From sequence record MZ443780.1: DNA of 64,000 nucleotides; one strand, given 5' to 3'. Both the position numbers and the translations under genes were made by a program. Below the pieces are notes generated by a model, which was not told the origin of the DNA, did no database searches, and saw nothing but the letters and a program-made list of their open reading frames with translations. Shown here piece after piece: positions 5,587 to 35,114 of the stretch (positions within the stretch are counted from its first letter, which is position 1; each line of letters begins with the position of its first letter).

Positions 5587-7521
5587 ATGGGCGTTCAGGT
5601 AGGTCGTCGTCATCTTGGCGGCGCACAGCCAGAGCCTGCGAAAAAGAAAGAGAAATCTATCGGCGCAGCCTCTTTACCGCGCGAGATAGGCAAAGCAATC
5701 CGCAGTGAGAGTTCGAGGCGCAATCTTGACTTCGTATCTCAATCTGCGGGTGGCGCAGGAATGGCTGCCGGTAATATGCAAATTGGTACTGTCCCTCTTG
5801 ATATCGACTTAGAGCCGATGATGGAAGGTATGGACTATGATGCTGACGACCGACAGCTATTCAATGTCTACCGCGATATGTATCACTTCGACCCAATCTG
5901 CGGTTCTTACGTGGACTTGTTCTCAACGCTGCCATTCTCCGATGTGAGTTTCAGTGGCGCGAAAGACAGTGTGCTCGAACCGTATTACGAAGTGAATGAA
6001 CGTTTGTCACTGACGACCAGTATGCCGAACATCACTACCGATATTCAGGTTACTGGTGCGTTCGTCGGCAGTATGATCTACAACAAAGACCGCAAAAAGT
6101 TCATCGACTTGATGACGCACCGTTACGACAACATCGACGTAACGCCACTGCCGTTTATCAGTCAGGACCCTATGTTCGAGCTGCGCATTCCACAGTACGT
6201 TAAAACTGCCTTCGCAAAAGAAGGTAAGCGTATTGACGCGCTGAAAAAAGAGCTGGGCCCTGGGTTTGTCGATAAGCTAATGAACGACACGACGATGGAG
6301 CTTGACCCCATCGGCACGATCTACATTCCGCGTAAGACGTTCAGCTTTGGTGAAGGTATCTCGGTGTTACGCCGTGTGCTGCCAATCTGGTTGATCGAAA
6401 AGAACCTGTATCGAGGAACGTTGATTGAATCGGGTCGTCGTCAACGCGGTATCTTACACGCCCAGTTGGGTGATGGTGATCAGTGGGAACCGTCGCAAGA
6501 AGAAATGGACTTTATGACCGACCTTCTTCTGTCTGCGGATAGTGACCCGATTGGATCTATCATTACCACGCGCTTAGGCGTGAACATCAGTGAGTTCCGC
6601 CAAGGCGGTGACTTCTGGAAGATTACGGACATCTGGGACCAGACTGCTCAATTCAAAATGCGAGCTATGGGCATCAGTGAAGCGTTCCTCAGCGGCGAAG
6701 CGAACTATGACTCAGGCGCTGCTGGCCTGACGATTTTCGTCGAAGCGATGCGGGCGTTCCGTGATCATCTGACGCGTAAAGTCTACTATGAGAAGGTATT
6801 CCCTCTTATCAGTATGATGAATGGTCTGGCTGTTCAGCGTAACGGCAAGATCATTAAGAAGAACAACATGATGGAAGGTGGCTTGACCGAAATCATGTAC
6901 AAACTGAATGACGGTAGCAAACTGTTTATTCCGAATGTGCATTGGTCTAAGCAACTGCGACCTGATGTTGACCAAGCGATGATGGAAAACTTACGTGCGA
7001 TGACTGAGCTGGGTGTTCCGGTTCCATTACGTGCAATCGCTGCGGCTGGCGGGTACAACTTCGACCAGATTCTTATGGATCAGGATGAAGACCTCGCAAT
7101 GCGCCGTAAGCTGATGGCGTATCGCAAACGTATGGCAGAGATTGACGCTGAGTTCGCTCCTCCTGAACCTGGTGGTGGAGGCGGTGAAGACAGCTTTAGT
7201 TCTGTCAGTTCTATGTCTGCTGACCTCAAACGTCGCCGCAGACACATCGCTGGTATCGGCCTGTCTTCTGCTGTGCTCGGTGGCGAACAACGCAAGCTGC
7301 TCAATCGTGACTTCGGTGAACGTTCCGAAATCTACGAAATCGGTAAGACTGGTAAGAAGAAACACGTCTTCCGTCAGTCTGTCGCAAACAGCCGTGCGAA
7401 TGACGCTATCTGGAAAGCGGCGAAGAACTACGAAGCAAACAAAACGATGCCTCTTGATGACGGCAAGGTTTCCTTCAAGCCTACCGCGCAGGAGCTTCGT
7501 GCAATGTCGAGACTCCGTTAA
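5587..7521 (+). CDS. portal protein (probable)
   Basis: 644 aa downstream of TerL; YRDMYHFDPICGSYVDLF N-terminal helix and helical/coiled-coil C-terminal part typical of large-phage portals; GAGG SD. Confidence 0.65.
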   Translation: MGVQVGRRHLGGAQPEPAKKKEKSIGAASLPREIGKAIRSESSRRNLDFVSQSAGGAGMAAGNMQIGTVPLDIDLEPMMEGMDYDADDRQLFNVYRDMYHFDPICGSYVDLFSTLPFSDVSFSGAKDSVLEPYYEVNERLSLTTSMPNITTDIQVTGAFVGSMIYNKDRKKFIDLMTHRYDNIDVTPLPFISQDPMFELRIPQYVKTAFAKEGKRIDALKKELGPGFVDKLMNDTTMELDPIGTIYIPRKTFSFGEGISVLRRVLPIWLIEKNLYRGTLIESGRRQRGILHAQLGDGDQWEPSQEEMDFMTDLLLSADSDPIGSIITTRLGVNISEFRQGGDFWKITDIWDQTAQFKMRAMGISEAFLSGEANYDSGAAGLTIFVEAMRAFRDHLTRKVYYEKVFPLISMMNGLAVQRNGKIIKKNNMMEGGLTEIMYKLNDGSKLFIPNVHWSKQLRPDVDQAMMENLRAMTELGVPVPLRAIAAAGGYNFDQILMDQDEDLAMRRKLMAYRKRMAEIDAEFAPPEPGGGGGEDSFSSVSSMSADLKRRRRHIAGIGLSSAVLGGEQRKLLNRDFGERSEIYEIGKTGKKKHVFRQSVANSRANDAIWKAAKNYEANKTMPLDDGKVSFKPTAQELRAMSRLR

Positions 7522-7877
7522 TGTACAGCATGGCAACGTGTGCAATTGACGGTGAGGAAACGGTGGTTGTGTATCGCCACCCTATCTTCACTGACTACGG
7601 CTTAGGCTTGAAGATTAACCGCGGTGGCGACATGCCTCTTGTTGAATGTAGCATCGTTACAGGCAGCATTGATGGTGTGTCTAAGCTCGAACCAGTGACT
7701 GACCATACTGCACCACTCGAAGTGCAAGCATGGTGTTTTGCTGGTATGCTCTCTTTAAGGGACATGCGGGAATCTGTAAATATGCAGAGCCTATCATTAG
7801 ATGCTTTATTCCCGAATAACGGGGGCATCGTTTATTATCAAACCCAAACTCAGCAAAATCAGGAGAGTGCATCGTGA
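7521..7877 (+). CDS. hypothetical protein
   Basis: TAATG coupling to portal gene. Confidence 0.6.
   Translation: MYSMATCAIDGEETVVVYRHPIFTDYGLGLKINRGGDMPLVECSIVTGSIDGVSKLEPVTDHTAPLEVQAWCFAGMLSLRDMRESVNMQSLSLDALFPNNGGIVYYQTQTQQNQESAS
7771..7782 (+). promoter_or_regulatory. candidate phage promoter AATCTGTAAATA
   Basis: Exact copy of recurrent motif, ~90 nt upstream of 7874 gene, inside a CDS. Confidence 0.4.
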
Positions 7878-8260
7878 GTGGATTGTTCCCGCATCGCGTA
7901 ATTACCCAGAAAGAAGGCTTCGTGTTCATCGTTCAGCCCGCTGACGAAACGGATGCAGATGCCGTAGTTGCCGCAGAGCAAGTCGAAGAAGTTCTGGCCG
8001 AAGCGTGGCCGACTGCACCTTCTGAGCTGACTGTCGATGACGTCACTGACCCAGAAGAAGCAGAGCTGATCTTTGCTGACGTTGTGCAACTGCTGGAAGA
8101 AGCGAACCGCGAAGAAGCGAACCAGATCGTTATCACCAGCATCGTTATTGTTGGCGGTCTGGCCATCGTTAACTGTATGCTCACCGGCGAAGATATCGGT
8201 GACGACGAAGAAGACGAAGACGATGATTCCGTTGAAGCCGACGAAGAAGAGTTCGATTAA
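7874..8260 (+). CDS. highly acidic hypothetical protein
   Basis: AGGAG SD, GTG start; about one third Asp/Glu. Confidence 0.7.
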   Translation: MSGLFPHRVITQKEGFVFIVQPADETDADAVVAAEQVEEVLAEAWPTAPSELTVDDVTDPEEAELIFADVVQLLEEANREEANQIVITSIVIVGGLAIVNCMLTGEDIGDDEEDEDDDSVEADEEEFD

Positions 8261-8269
8261 CGTCTGTCG

Positions 8270-8289
8270 TGAGGACCTTCGGGTCCTCA
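8270..8289 (+). promoter_or_regulatory. C(UUCG)G hairpin overlapping SD and start codon of 8289 ORF
   Basis: TGAGGACC-TTCG-GGTCCTCA perfect 8-bp stem; no U-tract. Confidence 0.6.
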
Positions 8290-8423
8290 TGAATCTCACT
8301 GACAGCAATGTCGCATACGCAGCAAAGTTCCTTACGAACAAGACAGAAGACGAAGCCCGTGCTCTGCTTGCTGCACTCAAGAATGAGGAAGTGGAATCTC
8401 TGTATAACTTCTTGGTGGCGTAA
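8289..8423 (+). CDS. small hypothetical protein (44 aa, MNLTDSNVAY...)
   Basis: C-terminal part of track ORF 8073..8423; ATG at 8289 after GAGGA; TAATG coupling to next gene. Confidence 0.55.
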   Translation: MNLTDSNVAYAAKFLTNKTEDEARALLAALKNEEVESLYNFLVA

Positions 8424-8920
8424 TGGAAACAAATTCAGTGGGCGCAAGCCCTAATAACGAAAGGCATCGCATCTTCTACAAGCAGCCGAAACGAGTACCT
8501 CCCTTCGATACAGCTTTCGTCCGTTCATCTAATCGTGAAGGTCTGAAAGTTCTCCTATCGGCTGCTCCTGAACATTGTCAGATTATTTTGTTTACGGACG
8601 GTCCCGGCGCTGCTTACGCCATGAAACGCCTCTTTAAGCGCAACTTCAAACTTTGTTCACAAGCGTTACAACTTGACCTAAGGACTCTCACGTTCACGGG
8701 TCAGGTCGTTTTTCAGTTCGTTCGTGGTGGTGCAATGCTCGACCCACTTGCTCGCTACTTCTGTGCTGGTGACAGTTACCTGCATGAGCTTGCGCAGACA
8801 AACAAGGGCATCGAGTTCGAAACAGACACGATTGATATGTTCTGTTGCGGTATCGGGTTTCATCGTGCGTTACGTGAGCGTGGTCGAGGCCGTTCTCTCG
8901 TATTCGCGGAGGAACAATGA
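8423..8920 (+). CDS. hypothetical protein
   Basis: 165-aa ORF coupled to neighbours. Confidence 0.6.
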   Translation: METNSVGASPNNERHRIFYKQPKRVPPFDTAFVRSSNREGLKVLLSAAPEHCQIILFTDGPGAAYAMKRLFKRNFKLCSQALQLDLRTLTFTGQVVFQFVRGGAMLDPLARYFCAGDSYLHELAQTNKGIEFETDTIDMFCCGIGFHRALRERGRGRSLVFAEEQ

Positions 8921-9945
8921 GTAGATCGTTTGCCAGTATCGGAAAGAACTCCGCGCCTGGTTCTTTGCCAAAGATGAAGATCAAGTACGGCAAGAAGCCG
9001 ATGCTTCACGTTGTTGATGCGTCGAACTGGATGTGCCGTGCTTACTTCGCTACGCAGAAAAATCCCACGTATGCGAAAGACGGTACGCCTACTTACGGCC
9101 TTCGTCAATTCATGTACATGGTCAAAGACTTGATCGACATTGCTGCTAAGGACCCGAACGGTGCGTATCTCGCTTTCTGCTTTGACCCAAGCTCAAGCGA
9201 TACGTGGCGTTATCGAGCAATACAGCAATGGGCTGCTGAACACAAGAAGAAATACATTCGTCAGGTGTTCAAGAAGTCTAGCGACTACAAAGGCAACCGC
9301 GACCGTACTCAGACCGTAGAGCTTGGCCCGCAGATGACACTCGCCCGAGAGATTCTGCAAATGGCGGGTTACTATGTCGGCATTAAAAAGCCGTATGAGT
9401 GCGATGACCTTGTGGGTACGTTGAGCGACCGCTTCAAGCACGACTACCTGATCAAGCTGTATTCGCGTGACAAAGACTACGTGCAACTTGTTGACCACAA
9501 GAACGTTGAGCTTATCATGCAAGCGCAGTCGAATGCTGCTGAACGCCGATTCGATTACAAAACAGCAAAAGGTTTCTTCGGTGTTCCTGCCGACCGAGTT
9601 ATCGACATGCTTGCTCTTTGTGGTGACGGCGTGGATAACGTGCCTGGCATTCCGGGACTTGGTGAGAAGACCTCGATTGAGCTTATCAATAAGTGGGGTG
9701 GGGCGATTGGTATTCGTGACGCTCTGCTGAAAGGCAAACTCAAGTCGAACGCTGGCTGGGCTAAAGCACTCATGATGCAAGTACCAGCTATGGATATTGA
9801 ATTGCAAATGGAGCTTGTAACTATCGACCGCAACGTACCGTCGTTACCTCGTAACATCGAAGCGTTTGCACCGCGCAGACCAGACATAAAAGCGCTGAAA
9901 GCTGTTAAGAAGCGCCTGGCTCTGCCTCAACTATTACACGTCTAG
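8917..9945 (+). CDS. 5'-3' exonuclease / flap endonuclease (PolI N-terminal, T5 D15/T4 RNase H-like)
   Basis: VVDASN, ECDDLVGT, SRDKDYVQL, LCGDGVDNVPGIPGLGEKT helix-3-turn-helix motifs. Confidence 0.92.
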   Translation: MSRSFASIGKNSAPGSLPKMKIKYGKKPMLHVVDASNWMCRAYFATQKNPTYAKDGTPTYGLRQFMYMVKDLIDIAAKDPNGAYLAFCFDPSSSDTWRYRAIQQWAAEHKKKYIRQVFKKSSDYKGNRDRTQTVELGPQMTLAREILQMAGYYVGIKKPYECDDLVGTLSDRFKHDYLIKLYSRDKDYVQLVDHKNVELIMQAQSNAAERRFDYKTAKGFFGVPADRVIDMLALCGDGVDNVPGIPGLGEKTSIELINKWGGAIGIRDALLKGKLKSNAGWAKALMMQVPAMDIELQMELVTIDRNVPSLPRNIEAFAPRRPDIKALKAVKKRLALPQLLHV

Positions 9946-9956
9946 TAGAGGACAGC

Positions 9957-10499
9957 ATGACGGAAAAGATTACGCAGTTGGCAAAGTGGTTTGATGCGGC
10001 GAAAGTCGCATTCAAGATGGGGACAGTTAATCCAGACGGTGATGCTGCGTTGCTTCTGGCAATTCACAAACGTCTGATTAAAGAAGTCGAAGATGCTGGT
10101 GATGCAGAAACCAAAGCATTCGCTCAGACAAATCTGTCAGAGTTCATTTCGGACCTGCGCATAGAGCTGCGCATGTTCGACCTGATCTGCAGGCGCTTCA
10201 ACACTGACCTGTACCCTCAGATCAAAATCGGCGATGACGTCAAAATCTATATCGCGCTCATGGCTCAAACGCCGGGCAGTGCTGTAATGGCAATGACGTA
10301 CCTGTATCTTGCTCGCTGCTACACGCTGCAAGACATGATCTTAAACTTCCTCCCGAACGGCTTCCCGGCCTCAGATGCTCTCGGTCTTACGTGGAGCATT
10401 CAAAAAGGGAACAGTGATGCGTTCACCGGAAATCTGGTGGACGATATCGAAACTGTAAATAGCCTGTACAATAAGATGTATAGCTCAGGAGAGAAGTAA
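9957..10499 (+). CDS. hypothetical protein
   Basis: GAGGA SD; 180 aa. Confidence 0.7.
   Translation: MTEKITQLAKWFDAAKVAFKMGTVNPDGDAALLLAIHKRLIKEVEDAGDAETKAFAQTNLSEFISDLRIELRMFDLICRRFNTDLYPQIKIGDDVKIYIALMAQTPGSAVMAMTYLYLARCYTLQDMILNFLPNGFPASDALGLTWSIQKGNSDAFTGNLVDDIETVNSLYNKMYSSGEK
10452..10461 (+). promoter_or_regulatory. candidate promoter variant ACTGTAAATA
   Basis: 47 nt upstream of macrodomain gene start. Confidence 0.4.
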
Positions 10500-11086
10500 T
10501 GGATTTGTCTGCAATCGGTTACGCTTCGAAACAGTTCCGAGTAATCCCCGTTGAGAAGGGAAATCTCGTGACTGATTTTATTCAAGGTAAGTTCCGCGTT
10601 ATCGGTGTTGAGTGCAATGCCCGTGGTGCTTACGGTAGTCCTATCCAGCAGAGTATCGCACGGCGCTTCCCGGAAGTCATGCGCAAAGTCGAATCAGTTG
10701 ACTACGAGCATGAACTGACTATCGGTAAGACTCATCTTATTCGTGTTGGTACTCAACACCGCCGCAATCTGTTTGTTGCTAACATGCACATTGCTCGCGG
10801 TTTCGGTCTGGGCCTCAATCGCACTATGTCCGAAGGCCCGATCAACCGTTTCAGTGAGCAGCACCTGACGCGAGCGTTTGAACATCTGATTGAACAGTGT
10901 GATAAAGAGAACATCGCACTCGACCGTCAGATCGCTATTCAGCGCTTCTATGGTGGACTCGGCGGAGTTTCGTGGGAAGAAGTATGTGTAGTCCTTGATG
11001 CTATCTGTGAAAAGCACAAGTTCAACATGTACGCGTACCTACCACGTAACTACAATTCTAACTACGTGCGTGGTAGCGCGAACTAA
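10499..11086 (+). CDS. macrodomain protein (Poa1p/TARG1/T4 Tk.4-like), divergent
   Basis: KGNL..., VECNARGAYGSPIQQSIARRFP, VANM, IAIQRFYGGLGGVSWEEV match the macro-fold pattern GDL/CN..G.MG.GIA/P.IG.GLGG..W. Confidence 0.7.
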   Translation: MDLSAIGYASKQFRVIPVEKGNLVTDFIQGKFRVIGVECNARGAYGSPIQQSIARRFPEVMRKVESVDYEHELTIGKTHLIRVGTQHRRNLFVANMHIARGFGLGLNRTMSEGPINRFSEQHLTRAFEHLIEQCDKENIALDRQIAIQRFYGGLGGVSWEEVCVVLDAICEKHKFNMYAYLPRNYNSNYVRGSAN

Positions 11087-11098
11087 CTCTGGGGTGTA

Positions 11099-11443
11099 TT
11101 GATGAATACAATACGCGGATTTGATTGGCTCTTTTACGGAGATGGAACCGATAGCGGCCAACACTCAATTTTAAGTATCGTCGTTGAACAAGCGGCGAAA
11201 TCAATACAGGTGGAAGTAGAACAAGGAAGTGCCGTGCCTGTAATTCAAGCGATTCAGGAAAACGAAGTCCTGTACGCGCAGACGGACGAAGGGCTTTATC
11301 GCGTTCGTTACAGTTGTTCGTTCCGTGGTCTTGACCCGAACTTCTTCCCGCAAGACAAAACGACATTCCGTTTGAAGCTCATCTCGTTTGAGTTTCTTCC
11401 GGGAGTTACTACGCACGATAAGCTGTTGGAGTACGTGCCATGA
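11099..11443 (+). CDS. hypothetical protein
   Basis: 114-aa ORF in operon. Confidence 0.6.
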   Translation: MMNTIRGFDWLFYGDGTDSGQHSILSIVVEQAAKSIQVEVEQGSAVPVIQAIQENEVLYAQTDEGLYRVRYSCSFRGLDPNFFPQDKTTFRLKLISFEFLPGVTTHDKLLEYVP

Positions 11444-12201
11444 TTACTGTGCAGAAAATTGAAGCCCGTTTAAAAAGACTGGACTATACTCGCCCCTCAC
11501 CTAGTCGTGAGATGCTTGAGGGACTTATGAAAGATGGACGCACTCGCATTCTTAGCAAATCAGCTTCGAGTGACCTGTGCAAAGACTCGATGGAATACTT
11601 CGAGTTCTGCCTTTCGCAAGTCGGCTCTTTCTGTACTGCGTCGTACAATGCTGTGGAGATTGGTCTGTCTCTCAACATTCAACCGATTTATATCGCTGCT
11701 GCTATTCACCTGTACGGTAGCGATTGGCAGTTCCGTTTCCTTGAGCTTAAACGTTTCGGTCTGCTTGCTCGTGGTGATTACTCTGTGTGGAAGTCTGCTG
11801 ACGCATGGTTCGGCCTGGGTGAATGTCGTCGTCGCTTAGTACGTGCTGGTGTGACGAACGAAATCTCCAGCGGTCAGTCTGAGCTTCGCATGGCAGTACG
11901 CAAAGGTGAGCTGGACAAGATTCGTGAGATTGCCAAGAAGTTTCCGCATCGCATGATGTCCATTCTCGACGTGAAGCGTGACCCACTGTATAACGATCCT
12001 CGTATTGCGGCATCACGTAAAGCGCGTGAGAAAGCAAAGGCAGAAGCTGCTGCTGCCGGTAAGAAGCTGGCTGAACCTCGTTCGTACTCTGACCTGAGCG
12101 CTGTGTTCAACGGAGCAATCGCGCCTCGTAATACTGATCGTGGGTTTAGCGATTCGTCAGAAACTCGCGGTACGGTGAACGGTCGTCGTTTTCGTGTCTG
12201 A
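11440..12201 (+). CDS. hypothetical protein
   Basis: 253-aa ORF, ATGA overlap. Confidence 0.65.
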   Translation: MITVQKIEARLKRLDYTRPSPSREMLEGLMKDGRTRILSKSASSDLCKDSMEYFEFCLSQVGSFCTASYNAVEIGLSLNIQPIYIAAAIHLYGSDWQFRFLELKRFGLLARGDYSVWKSADAWFGLGECRRRLVRAGVTNEISSGQSELRMAVRKGELDKIREIAKKFPHRMMSILDVKRDPLYNDPRIAASRKAREKAKAEAAAAGKKLAEPRSYSDLSAVFNGAIAPRNTDRGFSDSSETRGTVNGRRFRV

Positions 12202-12251
12202 TAACTGCGAACGGTAATTTCTGCTGTCAAAACAAATAACGGAAACCTCCA

Positions 12252-13022
12252 ATGAGCAACATTGATAATACAATGCCTGAGGGCAAGTGGGAGTTCAACG
12301 AGCCTGTTGCTGCTGTGTTTGATAACATGCTGCAAAACTCAATCCCGTCGTATGGCCGTATGCGCGACTTGACCTATCGTCTGGGTCGTCAGTTCGTCAC
12401 GCCCGGTACTGCTATCGTTGACCTCGGAGCTTCTCTGGGTCGTGCTATTGAGCCGTTCTGCAAAGAGTTCGGCGAGTACATCTACGTTCACGCTGCTGAC
12501 CGTCCTGAGCCAGATCGTGAAATCGGTAACATGTACTGCTGCTACGAAGTCGCTCCTGCGATGCTTGAACGCCTGCGTGAAAACGAAGTGCTGAAAGCGG
12601 CCAAAGCGAAAATCAGTAGCGAATCGCTGGTGGACGTTGACACGTTCCGCTTCGACGAACAGGTTGAGTGCTCGCTCATTCTGTCTGTACTCACTCTCCA
12701 GTTCACGCCGATTGAACATCGTCAACACGTCCTTGAGAAAGTCTATGACTCTCTTGCAAAAGGCGGTGCGTTCATTCTCGTTGAGAAGGTTCTCGGTGAC
12801 GACAACTTCCTCGACCGTCTGCTGGTGGACACGTACTATCACATGAAAGGCGACAACGGCTACACGCAAGAATCTATTGCTTGTAAGCGTAAGTCACTCG
12901 AAGGTGTTCTGGTACCTGTCAAAGCTGCATGGAACGAAGAACTGCTGCGCAAAGCGGGTTTCAACCGTGTAGAATGTTTCTACCGCGATCTCAACTTCGC
13001 CGGATGGATCGCAATTAAGTAA
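12252..13022 (+). CDS. cmoA: carboxy-S-adenosyl-L-methionine synthase (CmoA family)
   Basis: Full-length similarity to E. coli CmoA as recalled: W.F.E.VA.VF..M...S.P.Y, VDLGASLG, TLQF, GGAFIL.EK, K..NGY....I..KR..LE.V (Arg corresponding to the Cx-SAM-binding Arg retained), L.KAGF....F...NF. Confidence 0.88.
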   Translation: MSNIDNTMPEGKWEFNEPVAAVFDNMLQNSIPSYGRMRDLTYRLGRQFVTPGTAIVDLGASLGRAIEPFCKEFGEYIYVHAADRPEPDREIGNMYCCYEVAPAMLERLRENEVLKAAKAKISSESLVDVDTFRFDEQVECSLILSVLTLQFTPIEHRQHVLEKVYDSLAKGGAFILVEKVLGDDNFLDRLLVDTYYHMKGDNGYTQESIACKRKSLEGVLVPVKAAWNEELLRKAGFNRVECFYRDLNFAGWIAIK

Positions 13023-13032
13023 GGGAAGTAGC

Positions 13033-14295
13033 ATGAAAGTAAACGGGCGTATCTTAGCAATCGTACCGCACAAGACTCTGGCTGATCGCACGAAGTCTGG
13101 TGTTGGTGCTTACATCGACGGACTCGAAGCGTATGGTTTCTGCGACTTCATCACTGACGGTGAGAACAGTTCCGTAACCAAGAGCTTGTGGTTTAACTAC
13201 GGTGATACCACGCTGAGTGACGGTTATAAAGTGGGGCACATTCAAAGTGAACTGCTTGCTGCTCTTGAGCGTCATCCGTATCGTGCAATCATTTGCAGCA
13301 CATACGAAGCGATTGAGGCTGCTGTCGGTCTGGGCTTGCCAAAGATTATGCCCGTTTACTATCGTTCGCATAACAGCTTCCTGTTGACGCAAGATCTCAA
13401 TGGTCTCGGTGCTGAGAAGATTCACCGTGCTCTACTGCAAGCTGGCGTAACTGGTCTGCGTGTGTTAGCGAACTGTGATTCAACTGCAAACAATCTGGCA
13501 TCACGTTATCCTGTTGCTGCGTCTGTCGCGTACAACTCGTTCAACGTGCCTGACTACAATCCACCAGCAAAGCGCAAGCCGACGCTGTTGATTATCTGTC
13601 GCTACGAAAAGGTTAAGCGCCCTGCGTTTGCTGCTCGTATCGCTGCTGCATCTGGTCTGCCTGTTCGTGTGATGACAGGCAGTGATCGCCAAGTTAAAAG
13701 CTGGCAGAAAGAACTGACCGATGCCGGTGTCAAAGACCATACAGTCGTTAGCGGTATCAGTGGCAAAGAGAAACTTGAGTTCATCGGCGCTTGTACCGTG
13801 GCTCTCTCCTGCGCTGAAATCGAATCGTTCGCTAACGGTGTGCGTGAGTCTGTACCGTACTGCCCAACGTTCATCGTGCAAACATCGAAGTTCGACTGGG
13901 CGAAAGATTACACACGCTTCTGCTCTCTGGACAAACACATCCACGTTCGCACTGTTGACCGTGTGACAGAGCAGGAAGTCACTGAGCTGGGTAATGAGAT
14001 TGCTTACTGGGCTACTACTCGCTACCTGAACAATGCTCAACGTAAAGACTTGATGACCAAGTGGGTTGCTCAAGTCGATAAGGGCTGGGCTGACTTTATG
14101 AAGAATGCCGTTGTTGCTGATGACGGCAAGCCCATGAAAACTGACCTGTCGAAAGAACTCGAACAAAAAGGCGTAGTAGACTGGTCAGAAGTACCTGCGC
14201 TTATGCGTACTGTAAAAGCATTACACAAATGCCATGCTCGTATGGGCCTGACATTCGATGGCACCAAAATCAAAACTAAAGGAAGAAAGAAATGA
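13033..14295 (+). CDS. GT-B (GT4-like) glycosyltransferase
   Basis: ICRYEKVKR (cf. GRL..EKG) and ALSCAEIESFANGVRES (cf. PS..EGFG....EA). Confidence 0.65.
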   Translation: MKVNGRILAIVPHKTLADRTKSGVGAYIDGLEAYGFCDFITDGENSSVTKSLWFNYGDTTLSDGYKVGHIQSELLAALERHPYRAIICSTYEAIEAAVGLGLPKIMPVYYRSHNSFLLTQDLNGLGAEKIHRALLQAGVTGLRVLANCDSTANNLASRYPVAASVAYNSFNVPDYNPPAKRKPTLLIICRYEKVKRPAFAARIAAASGLPVRVMTGSDRQVKSWQKELTDAGVKDHTVVSGISGKEKLEFIGACTVALSCAEIESFANGVRESVPYCPTFIVQTSKFDWAKDYTRFCSLDKHIHVRTVDRVTEQEVTELGNEIAYWATTRYLNNAQRKDLMTKWVAQVDKGWADFMKNAVVADDGKPMKTDLSKELEQKGVVDWSEVPALMRTVKALHKCHARMGLTFDGTKIKTKGRKK

Positions 14296-15326
14296 GCGTG
14301 ATTGGTGATATCTATAACATTCCTCAACCGTATGCGATGTACTGCGGCAATGCCAAAACCAAAGCAATGGCAAAGATTACTGCCGGTATGGTTGAGTGGG
14401 CTCCTGAGAAGGTATGTTGTGTAGTCGAAGACGCTGAACGTTTGTTCGCTGACGTACCGTGTGTTGAAGTGCGCGATCTCGATAAGACCGACGCTGAAAC
14501 TCTGGTTATCGGCTTTGCGCCATTTGGCGGTCAGATTAACGATGACATTGATCGCGTTGTCTGCGAAGCATTAAAGCGCGGTCTGAACGTTGCTGCTGCT
14601 CTGCACGTCAAACTGGCAGACAATCCTAAATACTTCGCGCTCGCTCGTGAGCACGGTGTATCACTGTATGACTTCCGTCATCACCCTGAGCAATATCCTC
14701 TGGGCACTGGTATTCGTCGTGACGGTATTCGCGTTCTGACTGTTGGCACCGACTGCTCCTGCGGTAAGAAATTCACTGCGCTCGCTCTGACCAAGAAGCT
14801 GACCGAGATGAGTCAGAAAGCTGTGTTCTGTGCTACAGGCCAGACAGGCTTCTTGATTAGCGGGCGTGGCATCAACAACGACACTGTGGTTGCTGACTTC
14901 CTTGCTGGTGCTGCTGAGTGGCTTTCACCTGATGACAAAGACGCAATCTATTTGATTGAAGGTCAAGGCGCTATTCGTCACCCTGCGTATACTGGTGGCA
15001 GCATGAGTCTGATTGCTGGCTCGCAACCTGATGCGCTCGTTATGTGTCACACTGTTGGCCGTAACGTCATGATGGGCACTGAGCGCGAGATCAGTATCAC
15101 GGACGAAATCTCTGCTAACCTTGCAGCGGCTGCGATGCACGACTGGTACCCTCGCGTTGTTGGTATCAGTATCAACTTCTGCGAGTCTGGTATGGACAAA
15201 GAACAGCGCAAGAAATATCTGGCGACTATTGAGCGTAACATCGGTTATGTAGCGTTTGATCCGCAAGAAGGCGGCGAAGCGTTTGACCGTGTTGCTACTA
15301 CCATCGCGTTGCTGTCGCGCCCATGA
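14292..15326 (+). CDS. DUF1611-family P-loop protein (DgcN-like)
   Basis: LVIGFAPFGG, G.NVAAALH, VLTVGTDCSCGKKFT, ATGQTG, DTVVADFLAGAAE, IEGQGAIRHPAY, GSQPDALVMCH. Confidence 0.88.
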   Translation: MSVIGDIYNIPQPYAMYCGNAKTKAMAKITAGMVEWAPEKVCCVVEDAERLFADVPCVEVRDLDKTDAETLVIGFAPFGGQINDDIDRVVCEALKRGLNVAAALHVKLADNPKYFALAREHGVSLYDFRHHPEQYPLGTGIRRDGIRVLTVGTDCSCGKKFTALALTKKLTEMSQKAVFCATGQTGFLISGRGINNDTVVADFLAGAAEWLSPDDKDAIYLIEGQGAIRHPAYTGGSMSLIAGSQPDALVMCHTVGRNVMMGTEREISITDEISANLAAAAMHDWYPRVVGISINFCESGMDKEQRKKYLATIERNIGYVAFDPQEGGEAFDRVATTIALLSRP

Positions 15327-16258
15327 TAGTCCTAATAGACAACGCTGCGTTAGCGAGTAATGCAGCGTATTTAAAATCACTCGCACCGACCATGATTCCA
15401 GTTGTGAAAGGTAATTTCTATGGGCATGGTTTAGATTGCGTGACAGCGTTCGCGTCTGACTTTGACGTGCTTGCAGTGCATAACGTCCGAGAGGCATTGA
15501 CGCTGCGTGAGCTTGGGCTTGACCACACGCTGCTGATTCTCGGTGGTACTGACGCGCGTATGTGGAATATAGTTCCGGTATTGAATGCAGCGCAAGCCTC
15601 AACGTATGAAGGCCAGTATGCTGTGTTTGCTGATTGGGGCTGTCGTCGTATCAATGTCAGCCCTGGCCAACTTACCAGTCGCCCAGCTCTCGTTCTCATT
15701 CACTCTGAGGACTACCGTCAGCCTGTGTCTGCGCACACTGCTAACGAGATTGCTGTGCGTTACAACATGCCGCGCTCTCGATTGTCTGTAGGCTCAAGCA
15801 TGAATGCGCTTACACCAGACGCGCCGAAGTTGATGCCGCGTGTTGGTATGGCACTTACCGGTTATAGCAGTGATGAAACTGTTAACGGTAATTTGATCGT
15901 AGCGAAGACAGTGCTTGCTCGCATCTGCGATAAGCTGGATGCTGGTCGAGTATTTGGTTACGGTGCATTAGTGCCTAACAGCGCACACATGTTCCTGTAT
16001 TCGATTGATGTGGGTTATTACGATAACTTATATCAGTCAGAGAACAACACGCCTGTGCATTGCCCTAATGTGCCACACGCTAAGGTCACGTTGCTTACTG
16101 GCGTTGCGCGATCAATCAGCATGAACCATGCCTTCGTATTGTCAGATACTGAGCTACCGTTCGACTCTGAAATTGAATTGCTCGGACCGAACGTTCGCGC
16201 AGATTATCTGGCCAAACTTCACGGAACAACAACTGCGAATATTTTAAGGCTGGGTTAA
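15323..16258 (+). CDS. alr: PLP-dependent alanine-racemase-like enzyme
   Basis: PLP lysine motif VVKGNFYGHG, EALTLRELG, PRVGMALTG, catalytic Tyr in FGYG, VGYYD, SISMN; shortened barrel. Confidence 0.75.
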   Translation: MIVLIDNAALASNAAYLKSLAPTMIPVVKGNFYGHGLDCVTAFASDFDVLAVHNVREALTLRELGLDHTLLILGGTDARMWNIVPVLNAAQASTYEGQYAVFADWGCRRINVSPGQLTSRPALVLIHSEDYRQPVSAHTANEIAVRYNMPRSRLSVGSSMNALTPDAPKLMPRVGMALTGYSSDETVNGNLIVAKTVLARICDKLDAGRVFGYGALVPNSAHMFLYSIDVGYYDNLYQSENNTPVHCPNVPHAKVTLLTGVARSISMNHAFVLSDTELPFDSEIELLGPNVRADYLAKLHGTTTANILRLG

Positions 16259-16260
16259 TC

Positions 16261-17130
16261 ATGGCTAAACACGTTTTGCGTAAGCTGTTTGAACAGCACG
16301 TTAAGCAAGAGGTTAAAGCGGACAAAGTTGCAGTGCTGCTGTCCAGCGGCCTTGACGGACTTGTCAGTGCTCTTGCTGCCCACGACTTAGGAAAGAAGGT
16401 ACATGCCTTTACTTTCCAGATGGGTGACAACGAAAGTTTTGACAGCAAACACGCACGTAAAGTAGCAGAGAAGATGGGCTGGGAGTTCACGCTTGTGAAA
16501 GTTCCTACGTCCGACACTGCTATCGCTCAGGGCTGGCGCACACTTCACGCCAAGTATCGCTGTATCAAAAAGCGTGACTACGAGTGTGCTTACCCTATGG
16601 TGTATTGCTACAAGGCAATCAAAGAAGCAGGTTACAAGTACGTTCTCAGCGGCCTTGTTGCTGACGCTTACTTCTGCTTTGCGCGTAATACCCACATCGC
16701 AAAAATCAGCGGCCCGCATAGCGTACTCGAAAAGTTCGACGAGTATCGCAAAGAGTATTGGGCGCCGTGGTTCAAGAACGGTAAGAAGTCTCTCGGCGTT
16801 GACGGCTATAATCCAAGTGGTATGCTGCAACACGAAATGCTGTGCGACACTTTCGGCCTGACTCACGTTAACCCGTGGCTGTTGAAAAAAGTCCATGACT
16901 ACTTCATCGGTCGTTCGTGGCAAGAACTAAATCAACCCAAGCAGAAAATGCCAATAACAGAAGCCTGGGCTGATCACATCGCTGTGGTAGGGCATCGTCC
17001 TCACCGTGGCTATCAAACAGAAGCTGGAGTACCTGCGTACTTCGAACGCTTACTGGATAATCCTGAGATCAACTTCAACGGTCGCAAGCGTGTTATGGAC
17101 CTTGCGCGTGATTGGTCAACGAGGACTTAA
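16261..17130 (+). CDS. asparagine-synthetase-like ATP-dependent amide ligase lacking glutaminase domain (CmoY-like)
   Basis: PP-loop VAVLLSSGLDG, HAFTF, VLSGLVADAYF (cf. SGEGADELF), NPWL..., K..ITEAW; only 289 aa. Confidence 0.75.
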   Translation: MAKHVLRKLFEQHVKQEVKADKVAVLLSSGLDGLVSALAAHDLGKKVHAFTFQMGDNESFDSKHARKVAEKMGWEFTLVKVPTSDTAIAQGWRTLHAKYRCIKKRDYECAYPMVYCYKAIKEAGYKYVLSGLVADAYFCFARNTHIAKISGPHSVLEKFDEYRKEYWAPWFKNGKKSLGVDGYNPSGMLQHEMLCDTFGLTHVNPWLLKKVHDYFIGRSWQELNQPKQKMPITEAWADHIAVVGHRPHRGYQTEAGVPAYFERLLDNPEINFNGRKRVMDLARDWSTRT

Positions 17131-17131
17131 T

Positions 17132-17752
17132 ATGTTAGTACACATCATTGACGGAAGCGTAGGCGGTAACTATGTATTCCATAATCTGCAAGAGGCTGGC
17201 ATCAACGCGCGTGTTCATGCTCCTAGTGATCCACGTCGCCGCGCAGTAGCAGCAACCTATCCTTCGCTGTCTATGGGATTTACTCCCGAAGAGATTGAGA
17301 AGCATATCGGTAATGTGCTTGGCACGTATCGCGGTCTGTTCTTGATTAGCAGCTATGTTGGTTCGCTGGTGGCTCGCAGTATGATTGACCAGTGTGGTCA
17401 GAGTCATAACATCATCTACTGCGATGATCTCAAGTGCGGGTCTACGCCTGTCGTTGCTTCCTCGATTTCTGTAAATGTCTATCAGAAGCAACGACAACTC
17501 GGACGCATTGCAGGTCGAATCAAACACTTCGACTTCGACCATGAGTTCATTGTAGCTGACAAGGCTGTGCGTTTTGCAGCAGGGTCAGAATTTGATGAGC
17601 ATGGTGCGCGTGAAGAACTGGACGACACGCCCAAGTTCTTATCGAGTCCGTCAATGATTGTTGCTGCACACAAACTCGGTGTGAAGCGCAACGTGTATCA
17701 CAACTACGCTGGTCTGGTGCAAGAGTTCCTTGAAAAGCGCCAGCAGCAATAA
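17132..17752 (+). CDS. degenerate Asp/Glu-racemase-fold-like protein
   Basis: Start re-assigned to ATG 17132 after GAGGA; IIDGSVGG resembles MurI FDSGVGG; catalytic-Cys positions appear to be Ser (LISSY, LSSPS). Confidence 0.35.
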   Translation: MLVHIIDGSVGGNYVFHNLQEAGINARVHAPSDPRRRAVAATYPSLSMGFTPEEIEKHIGNVLGTYRGLFLISSYVGSLVARSMIDQCGQSHNIIYCDDLKCGSTPVVASSISVNVYQKQRQLGRIAGRIKHFDFDHEFIVADKAVRFAAGSEFDEHGAREELDDTPKFLSSPSMIVAAHKLGVKRNVYHNYAGLVQEFLEKRQQQ

Positions 17753-17764
17753 CGCGAGGGTACG

Positions 17765-18028
17765 ATGATCAATCGCTTTCAGTTAAAACGAGTTCCAGTG
17801 ATTGAAGCATGTCAGTGGAACGGCGAGAACATTGATGAGATGAATCAATTTCTCAACGGTAGCGGTTACGTTGTAGGTCGCTATGTTCAGATTGGTGTTA
17901 CAGACCAATTCGGTAAGCCGACTCTTGCAAACGTATCAGTCGGCAACTATGCAGTGAAACACGAAGACGGTAAGTTCGACGCAATCACCGCATCAGAATT
18001 GATGGACCTTTACGTACTGGCGGATTGA
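17765..18028 (+). CDS. hypothetical phage protein
   Basis: IEACQWNGEN motif common in small phage proteins; GAGG SD. Confidence 0.7.
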   Translation: MINRFQLKRVPVIEACQWNGENIDEMNQFLNGSGYVVGRYVQIGVTDQFGKPTLANVSVGNYAVKHEDGKFDAITASELMDLYVLAD

Positions 18029-18035
18029 GGAACAA

Positions 18036-18491
18036 ATGAACCTGTTTTCTATTCTAAAGCAGCAAGTGAAGAAAGCGCTGTCGACCGAAGCTAACCACGA
18101 ACCAGAAATACGTGCGCAGTTCGACTGGCGTTACGCTCTTGAGATCAAAGGGCAGATGTACATTGTAGGCAAGACGGGCGCTAACACCTGCTTCTATATT
18201 GAGCCAGGTACTACCGAGCCTGTTGGTTGTTATCCAGATGCGCTTCTGGAGAAGATTGATCAGTGGGGTGGCAGCAAGTATGTTTCGTTTGCTATCTACT
18301 TCAAACACTTCGATAGCCCTGTCGCTGAGAATATCAAGACAGAAGAACAAGCGCTGAAAGGTAAGCCGAAGACATTTAAGAAAGGTTACTTCATCTGCGG
18401 TGTGACACCGAAAGGCAAGCGTATCAAACTGTATCGCTTGCAGCAAGGTCTCAGCGGTATGCAGTGGGTTGCCGTCGAACCTAAAAAGTAA
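18036..18491 (+). CDS. hypothetical protein
   Basis: GAGGA SD; 151 aa. Confidence 0.7.
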   Translation: MNLFSILKQQVKKALSTEANHEPEIRAQFDWRYALEIKGQMYIVGKTGANTCFYIEPGTTEPVGCYPDALLEKIDQWGGSKYVSFAIYFKHFDSPVAENIKTEEQALKGKPKTFKKGYFICGVTPKGKRIKLYRLQQGLSGMQWVAVEPKK

Positions 18492-18519
18492 TCACGGTCT
18501 GTCCGTGTGAGGAGCAAGT

Positions 18520-18813
18520 ATGATTAGCGACATTACAGTTGGCCACATCTATAAGTCACCAAGCAATAAACCTTTTATTGTTGACTGCATTGCTGCGCAC
18601 GGACAGGATTGCTCATTGCCTATGGTTGTCTATCGTAATCTTGAAGCTACGTTTGACAAACCTGCTGATAGCATTTGGGTAATCCCTGAATCGTTGTTTG
18701 TGATGCAGTTCTCTGAGTACGAATCAGGAGAGCACCATGAGCACAACGAGCTTGTATCATCATCTGGAGTCAAGGGGATTTTCTCCTTCTTTCTATCACT
18801 GTTGGCTAAGTGA
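18520..18813 (+). CDS. DUF1653-like small beta-barrel protein
   Basis: G.IYK......F.V..IA.H......MVVY..L......WV.P...F pattern. Confidence 0.65.
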   Translation: MISDITVGHIYKSPSNKPFIVDCIAAHGQDCSLPMVVYRNLEATFDKPADSIWVIPESLFVMQFSEYESGEHHEHNELVSSSGVKGIFSFFLSLLAK

Positions 18814-20755: not shown

Positions 20756-21598
20756 ATGACAGTAATCAGCCCCATTCGTTATCAGGGCAATAAGCGTAGC
20801 CTTATCCCTCTTATTCTTGAAAACACACCTGATGTGAAAGACTGCCCGCGTATGGTCGATGTGTTTGGCGGTAGTGCCACCGTGTGCGCGAACATGCCTC
20901 AGAAGTTTCGCGTCTACAACGAGCTTAGTCCTCAGGTGTATGAGATCGTTAAGATGCTTGTCGAGCAAGACCCGAAGAAAACATTGGGTCAAGTCAAGCG
21001 TCTGGTAAAGCACTGGTGCCTGACAAACAGCAACGAAGCGAACTATGACGCGTTTCGAACTGTCGTCCAGAAGAAGCGTACTCCCATACTTCACTACGTT
21101 GCGCACAGACACGCACACTCGAACATGCTGCGCTTTAACCAGCAGGGTGTGTACAACGTAGGCTTCGGCGATCGTGGTCTGATTGGAAAGTTCGAGGAGC
21201 TTGAGCATGAGCTTACGACATTCCACCAGCACATGCAGGGTGTTCACCTGACGAACATGAAGTACGGTAAGTTGTTGGGTAGATTAGGCAATCAACTGGA
21301 TTGCAATACGTTCTGCTACTTCGACCCACCGTATCTGGCAAGTGGCGCGATGCAGTACGGCAAGTGGACTGAATCAAACGAACGTAACCTGCTTGCTACG
21401 CTTGAACAACTCAATCGCTTAGGCGTACCGTGGATGTTGAGCAACGTTACAGAGCACAGGCATTTCTCGAACGACCTGTTAAAGCGTTGGCTAAAGAAAC
21501 ACGCGACGACCGTGCTCTACCCGAACAAAAGCTATGCGATGAACAACGGCCAGAGTGGCTCGCATGGTACTGTTGAAATTCTGGCAATGAACTACTGA
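20756..21598 (+). CDS. dam: D12-class N6-adenine DNA methyltransferase (Dam-like)
   Basis: RYQGNKRSL, VDVFGGSATV, YFDPPY, WMLSN motifs. Confidence 0.9.
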   Translation: MTVISPIRYQGNKRSLIPLILENTPDVKDCPRMVDVFGGSATVCANMPQKFRVYNELSPQVYEIVKMLVEQDPKKTLGQVKRLVKHWCLTNSNEANYDAFRTVVQKKRTPILHYVAHRHAHSNMLRFNQQGVYNVGFGDRGLIGKFEELEHELTTFHQHMQGVHLTNMKYGKLLGRLGNQLDCNTFCYFDPPYLASGAMQYGKWTESNERNLLATLEQLNRLGVPWMLSNVTEHRHFSNDLLKRWLKKHATTVLYPNKSYAMNNGQSGSHGTVEILAMNY

Positions 21599-32984: not shown

Positions 32985-35114
32985 ATGATCATCAAGCCGC
33001 CAACCATGAAGGAAATCAACAAGCTGGCTAAACCCTGGCGTGGTATGAGTTTCTTCGCAGGTTGCGGTGGGTCTTCGACCGGTCACAAGATGGCCGGTAT
33101 CGACATTCTGTTGAGCAACGAGTTTATTGACTCTGCGCGTGAGTCGTATGAAGCAAACCACCCGACAACCAAAGTGCTGCCTCATGATATCCGTCGCTTA
33201 GACCCAAGCAAGCTGTTGCGCTACTGCGGTCTTGCTAAGGGTGAGCTGGATTTGCTTGATGGTAGTCCTCCGTGCTTTACCGAAGACACAATCATCCACA
33301 CTGCTGACGGCATGAAGTTCATTTCTGATATGCACGTCAACGATCTGGCAATGACGAGCGTTGGTGAATACTTTCCTGTGTACGACACTATGGTTCGTCC
33401 GTATGTCGGTACGATGCACAAGATTGAAACGATGCTCGGTAGCAACAAAGCAACGCCAGAGCACCCGTTCTTTGTTCGTCGCTCTCAGGCAGACGGTAGC
33501 TACTCTGAGCCGTTCTGGTGTGATGCGAAAGACGTGCAAGAAGGTGACTTGCTCGGTACGCCGCGCACTACCCCTGACATGGGGATTGACGTGTATCAGG
33601 CTCAGATTGATCAGTTGCCTAAGTTAGTAGCGGACTGGGTGACTTACCCTGAGTTCTGGTGGATGATTGGTCACTGGTGTGATCGTGGCACAATCGAAAC
33701 AGTTAACGGTGTTGACGTCATCTGCTTCGAGTCGCACTCAAGCCTTGAGAACGCGATGATCGAGCAGGCGTTTGATGCGCTTAAAATCAGTAGCCTGAAT
33801 CGTATCGACACGACAACGGCGCAGCGCAAAACATTCCGCACTGTTATCGAAGCAGAGCTGGTGCAGTTCCTGCGTCGATTCGTCAGTCAGGAGCAGAACA
33901 AGTTTTCTCGTCGTCTGCCTGCAATCGTGTTCCATTTGTCAAACGAGTTGAAGCAACAATTCATTCTCGGTTGTGCGGGGCATGACTACGTGACTGCTAT
34001 GGGCACAAGCCTTGCTATCACATCTGATAGTCGCCGCTTCCTGATTGAGCTGAACTACCTGTGTGCGTCTGCTTTCAATCGTCCGCTGTTTGACGGTCTT
34101 ATCTGGGCAGACGTTAACTTCGGTAGTGCGTTAACGCCGCGTGAGCGTAACAGTTCACGAGCGCATATCGGCTTCCTGTTCCTGCAGGATGAAGCGCTGT
34201 TCATGCACGAGTTCTCCGATGAAGACCCGCATCTCTGGGTTGAAGTGATTGAGAACCTCGCGTATCAGGCGACCTGTGACGTGTATAACTTCTCTGTGCA
34301 GACAGACGAGACATACGTTGCAAATAGCATGGTCGTTCACAACTGCAAAGGCTTCTCTACTGCTGGTGTGAAAGAAGAAGGCTGGGGCAAAGAAGTTAAA
34401 TACAGCGACAACAAGTATCAGCAGGTTGATGACCTGTTCGATCAGTATTGCCGTATGCTTCAAGGCATGGAGCCAAAAGTGTTCACTGCGGAAAACGTCA
34501 GCGGCTTAATCAAGGGTACCTCTAAAGGGTACTTTGTCGAAATCATGAAGCACTTCGACAGATTAGGTTATTATGTTCGTGCTCCGATGTTGAATGCTTG
34601 CTGGCTGGGTGTACCGCAATCGCGTGAACGTATCATCTTCATGGGTGTGCGTAAAGACGTTGCCCACGCACTCGGATATAAGTCTGCTCAGACCGCTGTG
34701 CCTGATGTTATCCCGTGCGAGACGCAAGCGTTTCTCGGCGATGCGTTGCCGCACATCATGCGATACAAAACAACGCAGCGTGACCTGATCAAATATCTGC
34801 CTGCCGTTAACGGTCCGATGCCTACGATTACTGCTGCTGATGCGATTGCGTATGAGACTGCGCGATTCTCGTCTGCTGGCTTTATCGAAGACAACAAAGG
34901 TCATCGCCGTAAGCTGACCATTGACGAACTCAAAGTTATCTCTGGACTGCCGTCTGACTATAAGCTGATGGGTGAGTTTGAAGAACAATGGGAACGTCTT
35001 GGTCGTATCTGTGTGCCAGCAATGACACACGCTGCATCTAAGGCTTTCATCGAGCACATTCTTCTGCCGTATGCGAAGAAGCGTAAGAAGAAGCCCGGCG
35101 ATATCTTTAAGTAA
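32985..35114 (+). CDS. C5-cytosine DNA transferase (Dcm fold), intein-containing, probable carboxymethyltransferase (CmoX-like)
   Basis: Motif I SFFAGCGG, II NEF, IV GSPP|CKGFS, VI AENVSGL, VIII QSRERIIF, IX RKLTIDELK, X LGRICVP (Arg in place of Asn); GAGG SD before ATG 32985. Confidence 0.85.
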   Translation: MIIKPPTMKEINKLAKPWRGMSFFAGCGGSSTGHKMAGIDILLSNEFIDSARESYEANHPTTKVLPHDIRRLDPSKLLRYCGLAKGELDLLDGSPPCFTEDTIIHTADGMKFISDMHVNDLAMTSVGEYFPVYDTMVRPYVGTMHKIETMLGSNKATPEHPFFVRRSQADGSYSEPFWCDAKDVQEGDLLGTPRTTPDMGIDVYQAQIDQLPKLVADWVTYPEFWWMIGHWCDRGTIETVNGVDVICFESHSSLENAMIEQAFDALKISSLNRIDTTTAQRKTFRTVIEAELVQFLRRFVSQEQNKFSRRLPAIVFHLSNELKQQFILGCAGHDYVTAMGTSLAITSDSRRFLIELNYLCASAFNRPLFDGLIWADVNFGSALTPRERNSSRAHIGFLFLQDEALFMHEFSDEDPHLWVEVIENLAYQATCDVYNFSVQTDETYVANSMVVHNCKGFSTAGVKEEGWGKEVKYSDNKYQQVDDLFDQYCRMLQGMEPKVFTAENVSGLIKGTSKGYFVEIMKHFDRLGYYVRAPMLNACWLGVPQSRERIIFMGVRKDVAHALGYKSAQTAVPDVIPCETQAFLGDALPHIMRYKTTQRDLIKYLPAVNGPMPTITAADAIAYETARFSSAGFIEDNKGHRRKLTIDELKVISGLPSDYKLMGEFEEQWERLGRICVPAMTHAASKAFIEHILLPYAKKRKKKPGDIFK
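33273..34343 (+). mobile_element. intein (357 aa) with degenerate LAGLIDADG-like region in catalytic PC motif
   Basis: Starts CFTEDT; block B ATPEHPF; WMIGHWCDRG and FILGCAGHD remnants; ends VYNFSV...YVANSMVVHN followed by Cys+1. Confidence 0.92.

Follow-up and report, generated by a model that had tools for sequence, protein, structure and literature searches.

Erwinia phage pEa_SNUABM_40 (MZ443780.1) is a jumbo phage in the genus Alexandravirus with a genome of 267 kb. The stretch of DNA analysed here (the window) comprises bases 1-64000 of that genome and is 100% identical to it over the gp18-gp19 region, with coordinates unchanged. An earlier note, made from the sequence, had placed a DUF1611 protein beside an alanine-racemase-like protein at positions 14292-16258, between a CmoA homologue with a glycosyltransferase on one side and an amide ligase on the other. 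Two plus-strand open reading frames indeed lie there: gp18 (14292..15326), which encodes a 344-aa, two-domain DUF1611/DgcN-like protein, and gp19 (15323..16258), which encodes a 311-aa, short pyridoxal phosphate (PLP) racemase with an alanine racemase fold. The flanking genes also bear out the arrangement that had been described, with gp16 (12252..13022, plus strand), which encodes a CmoA-like carboxy-S-adenosylmethionine (carboxy-SAM) synthase, and gp17 (13033..14295, plus strand), which encodes a GT-B (GT4-like) glycosyltransferase that is optional in the cluster, on the upstream side, and gp20 (16261..17130, plus strand), which encodes a CmoY-like AMP-forming amide ligase made up of the AsnB synthetase domain only, on the downstream side. 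The five genes gp16-gp20 are spaced by 4-base overlaps or gaps of 1-10 bases, and gp18 and gp19 are joined by an ATGA stop/start overlap. In MZ443780.1 nearly every gene, gp18 and gp19 included, is annotated as 'hypothetical protein'. Our comparisons suggest that gp18 and gp19 form an accessory module, not described before, of a known DNA hypermodification system.

Results

The predicted product of gp19 resembles an alanine racemase of reduced size. In Pfam, Ala_racemase_N matched residues 5-79 only (4e-14) and the match to the C-terminal domain was sub-threshold (0.002), while the score against the Alr equivalog TIGR00492 in NCBIfam was 53 bits, below the cut-off of 168. A profile of the gp19 family nevertheless aligns with the alanine racemase 4qhr end to end, and the AlphaFold model (predicted local distance difference test score, pLDDT, 96.4; predicted template modelling score, pTM, 0.92) has the two-domain fold, a barrel and a beta domain. 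Foldseek listed 50 structural matches, of which 49 are chains of alanine racemases and one is a histidine racemase; their query TM-scores span 0.65-0.81 and for the most part fall within 0.75-0.81. Of the motifs quoted in the earlier note, VVKGN occupies residues 27-31 of the protein, FGYG residues 211-214 and SMN residues 266-268.

To compare active sites we used an alignment of 99 sequences, in which 11 members of the short family could be set against 87 other homologues. K29, the PLP-binding catalytic lysine of the VVKxNxYGHG motif, is present in all 11 family members and in all 87 homologues, and the second catalytic base, Y213 (equivalent to Tyr265 of the partner subunit), is present in 11/11 family members; the retention of these two residues, which the earlier note had read from the VVKGN and FGYG motifs, extends to all 11 members. 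Also kept in all 11 are the PLP-holding residues Y33 (Tyr43), R109 (Arg136), H127 (His166), R173 (Arg219) and G175 (Gly221), whose roles in solved enzymes are listed in PMC3485190, and M267 (the equivalent of Met312) is kept in 10/11.

The substrate pocket is a different matter. The same note had taken altered specificity from the SMN motif. The motif is there, and the position after M267 is Asn in 9/11 family members, as against Asp in 73/87 and Asn in 7/87 ordinary homologues. Judged from the alignment, however, a stronger sign of altered specificity is the position of Tyr354, which is Ala (Ala305 in gp19) in 10/11 family members and Tyr in 76/87 homologues. Strict alanine specificity is defined by Tyr354 together with Tyr265'; in other racemases the Tyr354 position holds Asn (VanT, a serine racemase), Ala (Bar, which prefers lysine), Thr (Lyr) or Pro (BsrV), and in VanT the exchange of this Asn for Ala had no strong effect on catalytic efficiency with either Ser or Ala (PMC3485190, PMC4542195). 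An alanine here is compatible with Ser, Lys-type and other substrates. The entryway differs as well, with a position that is mostly Asp/Glu in ordinary homologues occupied by Arg or Lys in 7/11 family members, and a mostly-Arg position, taken as Arg309, occupied by Ala or Ser in 9/11; these positions were equated with Asp171/Glu172 and Arg309' of PMC3485190 by motif context in this alignment. The position of the carbamylated lysine is Phe102 in gp19, and the protein is ~45 residues shorter than ordinary alanine racemases. Because the catalytic and PLP-holding residues are intact and the Tyr354 position is Ala, gp19 is very likely to be an active racemase, though one that is not strictly specific for alanine.

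The product of gp18 matches DUF1611_N (2e-17) and DUF1611 (3e-51) in Pfam, the latter being a C-terminal P-loop domain, and the NCBIfam family 'N-acetyltransferase DgcN' (NF041892) at 9.5e-92 and 307 bits; its best PDB match is 7xrj (5e-62). The phage DUF1611 proteins form a single clade (100/100 bootstraps) that is sister to cellular DgcN at 40-45% identity, and 46 invariant residues, the P-loop GTDxxxGK among them, are common to the phage proteins and eight cellular DgcN members. Like cellular DgcN, gp18 is acidic (isoelectric point, pI, 5.4); it is also of the same size and has no added DNA-binding features. The activity of DgcN, according to the NCBIfam name and the papers that cite it, is the acetyl-CoA-dependent N-acetylation of D-glutamate, as the earlier note had stated. 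That note had also held that DUF1611 proteins usually neighbour racemases. A racemase gene does adjoin the DgcN gene in a cellular example, Dickeya lacustris, but it encodes an enolase-superfamily (MR_MLE) enzyme and not a PLP enzyme; the neighbours of phage DUF1611 genes are the PLP racemase and the ligase, with no pairing with a DgcA-type enolase-superfamily racemase.

The genes around the pair point to the modification of cytosine. In Synechococcus phage S-B43, as published in 2025, CmoA makes carboxy-SAM, CmoX, a C5-methyltransferase homologue, uses it to make 5-carboxymethylcytosine (5cxmC), and CmoY, an AsnB-like ligase, joins glycine to 5cxmC to give 5-glycyl-cxmC (PMC12783734). With the three S-B43 genes as queries against the genome of pEa_SNUABM_40, all three parts of the system were found, as gp16, gp51 and gp20. 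gp16 matches the CmoA family TIGR00740 (1.1e-41; 143 bits, below the bacterial equivalog cut-off of 193), has the CmoA structures 4gek, 4iwn and 1im8 as its best PDB matches and is 31% identical to S-B43 CmoA. gp51 (32985..35114, plus strand) encodes a homologue of the CmoX-type cytosine C5-carboxymethyltransferase whose best PDB match is 8yf3 (SpCmoX; 7e-53, versus 8e-16 for M.HaeIII), and it carries the GSPPC motif together with a motif X Gly-Arg that matches SpCmoX R350, the Arg that binds the carboxylate of carboxy-SAM. It is one continuous open reading frame with an in-frame intein (33273..34343, plus strand) directly before the catalytic Cys; its Pfam domains are DNA_methylase, Intein_splicing and Hint_2, and the junctions are GSPP/C on the N-terminal side and HN/C on the C-terminal side. 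The full-length gene is conserved in 43 records of Erwinia/Dickeya jumbo phages. (Hint and intein domains also occur in a metagenomic CmoX of 743 aa, on contig L022, and are absent from the 341-aa CmoX of its close relative L025.) gp20, finally, matches Asn_synthase in Pfam (7e-16) and is 34% identical to the characterised S-B43 CmoY (E=3e-54). The target of S-B43 CmoX is the GC dinucleotide, of which the pEa_SNUABM_40 genome holds 19,085; if gp51 shares this target, the demand for a building block of the adduct could be large.

The short racemase is rare and is tied to these genes. A word-based search of 5.8 billion proteins returned six clusters, and an exhaustive profile search of 1.84 billion representatives returned eight representative clusters at E<=1e-30, below which there was a gap and then ordinary alanine racemases at <=86 bits. 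Pattern scans, which can miss relatives, found none in 185,579 reference species genomes and none in Joint Genome Institute (JGI) metagenomes, and a pattern scan of IMG/VR added one contig, L044, from the same Erwinia phage group (cassette type B), and no new phage background; the clade was found only in phage or metagenome contigs. Every member that could be placed lies in the gene order DUF1611, racemase, ligase (8/8 phage backgrounds examined), with CmoX and/or CmoA adjacent in 6/8. DUF1611 occurs without the racemase in five backgrounds, and the racemase was never seen without DUF1611. Four types of interval separate CmoA from the ligase within the Erwinia/Dickeya jumbo phages: empty; DUF1611; glycosyltransferase and DUF1611; or glycosyltransferase, DUF1611 and racemase. 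A 216-kb IMG/VR contig, L039, carries CmoX, DUF1611, a ligase and CmoA at 6995-10612, and because its ligase is of the CmoY/Y3 type (26% identical to gp20), DUF1611 is not strictly tied to a ligase of the gp20 type.

Comparison of close relatives indicates that the tract changes as a unit. CmoA is 81-95% identical across Erwinia/Dickeya phages of all four cassette types, and between the ligase of the DUF1611-bearing phages and that of Y3 and SNUABM_35, which lack DUF1611, identity is only ~25%. Moreover, two metagenomic phages, L025, which has the racemase, and L023, which lacks it, are 97-100% identical in the flanking genes and differ by one tract that runs from the first DUF1611 codons to ~600 bp into the ligase, that is, over its first two thirds; within this tract DUF1611 is 72% identical at the amino acid level and the racemase is an insertion or deletion. 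DUF1611 and the racemase are thus swapped as a cassette between otherwise near-identical phages.

Two ligase residues track the racemase. C139 and A141 of gp20 lie four and six residues past an Asp that aligns with the Asp of VLSGEGSDEVF in E. coli AsnB, a segment that we take to be part of the synthetase active site. Positions 139/141 are C/A in 12/12 racemase-positive clusters and L or V/N in 6/6 racemase-negative ones. The rule was tested on two loci examined afterwards, L041 (negative), which reads L-F-N, and L042 (positive), which reads C-F-A, for a total of 18/18. Both genes of the pair are, in addition, under purifying selection, since dN/dS (the ratio of nonsynonymous to synonymous substitution rates) lies at 0.12-0.19 in the racemase-like gene and at 0.06-0.19 in the DUF1611 gene.

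The encoded proteins also differ in charge. gp18, gp19 and CmoA are acidic, and the ligase gp20 (pI 9.3) and the glycosyltransferase gp17 (pI 9.1) are basic; net charges are +11 to +19 for the ligases and +9 to +12 for the glycosyltransferases, with S-B43 CmoY as an acidic exception. This split supports a likeness of CmoA, gp18 and gp19 to metabolite enzymes, set against the basic ligase and glycosyltransferase.

Discussion

On the strength of these sequence comparisons we think it fairly likely that gp18 and gp19 prepare a D-amino acid for attachment to phage DNA, as the small-molecule branch of a 5cxmC hypermodification pathway. By homology to characterised enzymes, gp16 would make carboxy-SAM and gp51, after splicing of its intein, would carboxymethylate C5 of cytosine in DNA. 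gp19 would be a PLP racemase of the cytoplasm, turning a free L-amino acid into its D-form; because the Ala at the Tyr354 position would open the pocket, the substrate need not be limited to alanine, and because a PLP racemase needs a free alpha-amino group, the enzyme would act before attachment, as a supply enzyme. The D-amino acid would then be taken by gp18 as an acyl acceptor, as D-Glu is by DgcN, which is its most likely use because the residues invariant in cellular DgcN are kept. gp20, by homology to S-B43 CmoY and its use of glycine, would adenylate the carboxylate of 5cxmC and join an amine to it, which would fix the resulting building block onto the base, and in phages with gp17 the adduct may be glycosylated further. 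The proposal that the pair supplies or tailors an amino acid that is attached to DNA had been made in the earlier note, and the genomic context (the full CmoA/CmoX/CmoY set, the linkage, the cassette swap and the co-variation of the ligase) argues in its favour.

Several observations weigh against this scheme. The reaction reported for DgcN, N-acetylation at the alpha position, would block the very amine that a CmoY-type ligase needs; this conflict would be avoided by a second amine on the amino acid, by another acyl donor, by action of gp18 after ligation, or by a gp18 that is itself an ATP-using ligase. We accordingly lean only slightly towards a gp18 that acts on the amino acid while it is still free, and not on DNA; for that order of events the substrate would need to have a second amine, or the acyl donor to be an altered one. 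The score of gp18 against the DgcN equivalog is below the cut-off of 480. The DUF1611 tree groups by phage lineage and not by racemase status, and the racemase-linked signature in DUF1611 is nearly nil, being confined to L versus M at position 104; a racemase-specific subtype of DUF1611 was rejected on these grounds. As few as two or three independent racemase-negative lineages may underlie the ligase signature, the argument from charge is weak, since S-B43 CmoY works on DNA yet is acidic, and a search of the literature found no chemical data on Alexandravirus DNA.

The same observations lend themselves to other arrangements of the pathway. The racemase might feed the ligase directly, with the D-amino acid joined through its alpha-amine to 5cxmC and gp18 acting later, either as a finishing acyltransferase on the DNA-borne adduct or on another group. 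Other phage pathways, which hypermodify thymidine, use N-acetylation as a finishing step, the residues that track the racemase sit in the ligase and not in DUF1611, and the swapped tract covers the N-terminal two thirds of the ligase. Formation of the amide would, however, use up the alpha-amine and leave N-acylation of the DgcN type without an obvious acceptor, and neither the acidity nor the size of gp18, nor its lack of added DNA-binding features, is what one might look for in an enzyme that acts on DNA, so we regard direct feeding as possible but doubtful. Alternatively, gp18 could be an ATP-using P-loop ligase that adds the D-amino acid from gp19 to an amino acid already attached to 5cxmC, giving a dipeptide-like adduct. 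This would suit the Pfam label of its C-terminal domain as a P-loop, the Walker-A-like GTDxxxGK that is invariant in phage and cellular proteins alike, and the extendable free carboxylate of a CmoY-type product (PMC12783734). Against it stands the acetyl-CoA-dependent N-acetylation of D-Glu, the sole activity that the NCBIfam name and the citing papers give for the family, and we consider such a ligase unlikely.

Two further possibilities concern what the pair makes and for whom. gp19 might use the same fold for a PLP reaction other than racemisation, for instance a decarboxylation or an aldol cleavage, and so make an amine for the ligase; its reduced length, its low score against the Alr equivalog (53 bits versus a cut-off of 168) and its several changed entryway residues could be read in this way. 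Yet both racemase bases and the equivalents of Arg219, Arg136 and His166 are kept in 11/11 family members, all 50 structural matches listed are racemases, and the best sequence matches are to the Ala_racemase families and not to decarboxylase families of the same fold, which makes this very unlikely. The pair might instead act on host metabolism, by remodelling peptidoglycan precursors or salvaging D-amino acids, and have nothing to do with DNA, an alternative that the earlier note had also raised with respect to peptidoglycan. Alanine racemases do normally serve cell-wall synthesis, and cellular DgcN, as far as its NCBIfam entry and the citing papers go, belongs to a D-Glu catabolic pathway in which it stands beside a racemase. 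The strict linkage to DNA-modification genes disfavours this idea: the pair is wedged among such genes in eight phage backgrounds, it co-varies with the ligase and is swapped along with part of it, and a pattern scan of reference cellular genomes did not find the racemase clade. We give a role in host metabolism the smallest chance of the readings considered here.

If the pair does prepare a D-amino acid for attachment, that amino acid might be present in the DNA of the virion as part of a cytosine adduct, which may be N-acylated and, in phages with gp17, glycosylated; it would be the first D-amino acid known from a modified DNA base. The tract that spans DUF1611, the racemase and the N-terminal part of the ligase would then act as an exchangeable cassette, by which phages that are otherwise identical would differ in their adduct, as expected under selection by host nucleases. 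This combined prediction is a tentative one, to which we would give somewhat less than an even chance.

Like the S-B43 system, that of pEa_SNUABM_40 has a CmoA homologue, a CmoX homologue with SPPC and the Arg that binds the carboxylate, and an AMP-forming ligase that resembles AsnB and lacks a glutaminase domain. Unlike in S-B43, a DUF1611 gene, a short racemase gene and a GT-B glycosyltransferase gene are inserted between CmoA and the ligase, CmoX lies ~16 kb downstream of the ligase and bears an intein, and gp20 is only 34% identical to CmoY and has an extra segment that CmoY lacks. The words DUF1611, racemase and acetyltransferase are absent from the main text of PMC12783734, and we found no later paper that has them. 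The cellular counterpart of gp18 belongs to the DgcN-DgcA pathway of D-glutamate catabolism, reportedly described by Yu et al. in ISME J in 2023 (PDB 7xrj). gp18 shares the two-domain architecture, the level of identity and the invariant residues of DgcN given above, and a racemase gene is adjacent in both settings; the phage partner, however, has the PLP alanine-racemase fold that acts on free amino acids, whereas the cellular partner is an enolase-superfamily racemase that acts on the N-acetylated product, and the phage setting is DNA modification rather than catabolism. gp19, in turn, resembles VanT (Ser), Bar and Lyr (Lys-preferring) and BsrV (broad) in its fold, its two-base catalytic set and the replacement of Tyr354 by a small residue, Ala as in Bar. 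It differs from them in being shorter, in lacking the carbamylated Lys, in the altered charges of its entryway and in being known only from phage and metagenome contigs.

The 2025 study of 5cxmC did not settle what amines are joined to the carboxymethyl handle in other phages. The recurring sub-module defined here, consisting of DUF1611 and sometimes a dedicated racemase and a glycosyltransferase, bears on that question. If our interpretation is correct, it would extend the chemistry of DNA hypermodification to D-amino acids, give the DgcN family a second biological role and enlarge the alanine racemase family by a new, minimal branch confined to phages. The near-isogenic L025/L023 pair, which differs in the racemase, and the four Erwinia/Dickeya cassette types together make a ready comparison set for descriptive chemistry.

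Neighbouring genes and related clusters

Searches of the region for other features were largely negative. Sites resembling promoters and terminators in 11000-18600 were found at chance frequency, ARAGORN found no tRNA or tmRNA genes in the 64000-base window, and PHROGs holds no family for gp17, gp18 or gp19.

gp17 has no Pfam match, and its relatives match Glycos_transf_1 weakly. Its residues E264 and E272 are invariant and have the spacing of the EX7E motif, and its model (pLDDT 81) led Foldseek to the GT-B enzymes GlgM, a glycosyltransferase of phage HY126, BshA and MshA. The HY126 enzyme, from a phage whose DNA carries arabinosylated 5-hydroxycytosine (PMC13326640), was the second-ranked structural match, at a sequence identity of just 13-14%. 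gp17 is thus like the GT-B phage DNA glycosyltransferases in fold, and differs in being encoded by a gene that is optional within these clusters: a gp17-like gene stands as an independent option just upstream of DUF1611, and all four combinations of presence and absence exist. We found no positions linked to the glycosyltransferase in DUF1611 or the ligase. Two related phages, L042 (4770-5990) and L026, differ in the presence of this gene and are 95% identical in DUF1611 and the ligase and 90% identical in the racemase; they offer a natural comparison pair for the sugar step, although they are less closely related than L025 and L023.

Elsewhere in the window, gp29 (20756-21598) encodes a Dam-family N6-adenine DNA methyltransferase (PF02086, 5e-23), because of which the phage probably carries a second, simpler DNA modification. 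gp29 had been considered as the enzyme that accepts the carboxymethyl group, and was dropped once the CmoX homologue was found. The product of gp46 (29197-30300) is homologous to thymidylate synthase and, at 367 aa, exceeds the usual length by ~100 residues.

Related clusters hold other accessory genes. One of them, on contig L020, ends with an AroFGH-type 3-deoxy-D-arabino-heptulosonate 7-phosphate (DAHP) synthase gene (12162-13025; TIGR00034, 180 bits versus a cut-off of 173), whose product plausibly boosts prephenate, a co-substrate of CmoA, and which therefore provides a precedent for precursor-supply genes as a theme in these clusters. In Y3 (L007, 6797-8592) and SNUABM_35 (L008, 6819-7682), both without DUF1611, the AsnB-like ligases are as distant from gp20 as noted above (~25% identity) and 34% identical to each other, which suggests further adduct chemistries on the same CmoA/CmoX base; Y3 has, in addition, a 2-oxoglutarate-Fe(II) (2OG-Fe(II)) oxygenase gene downstream.

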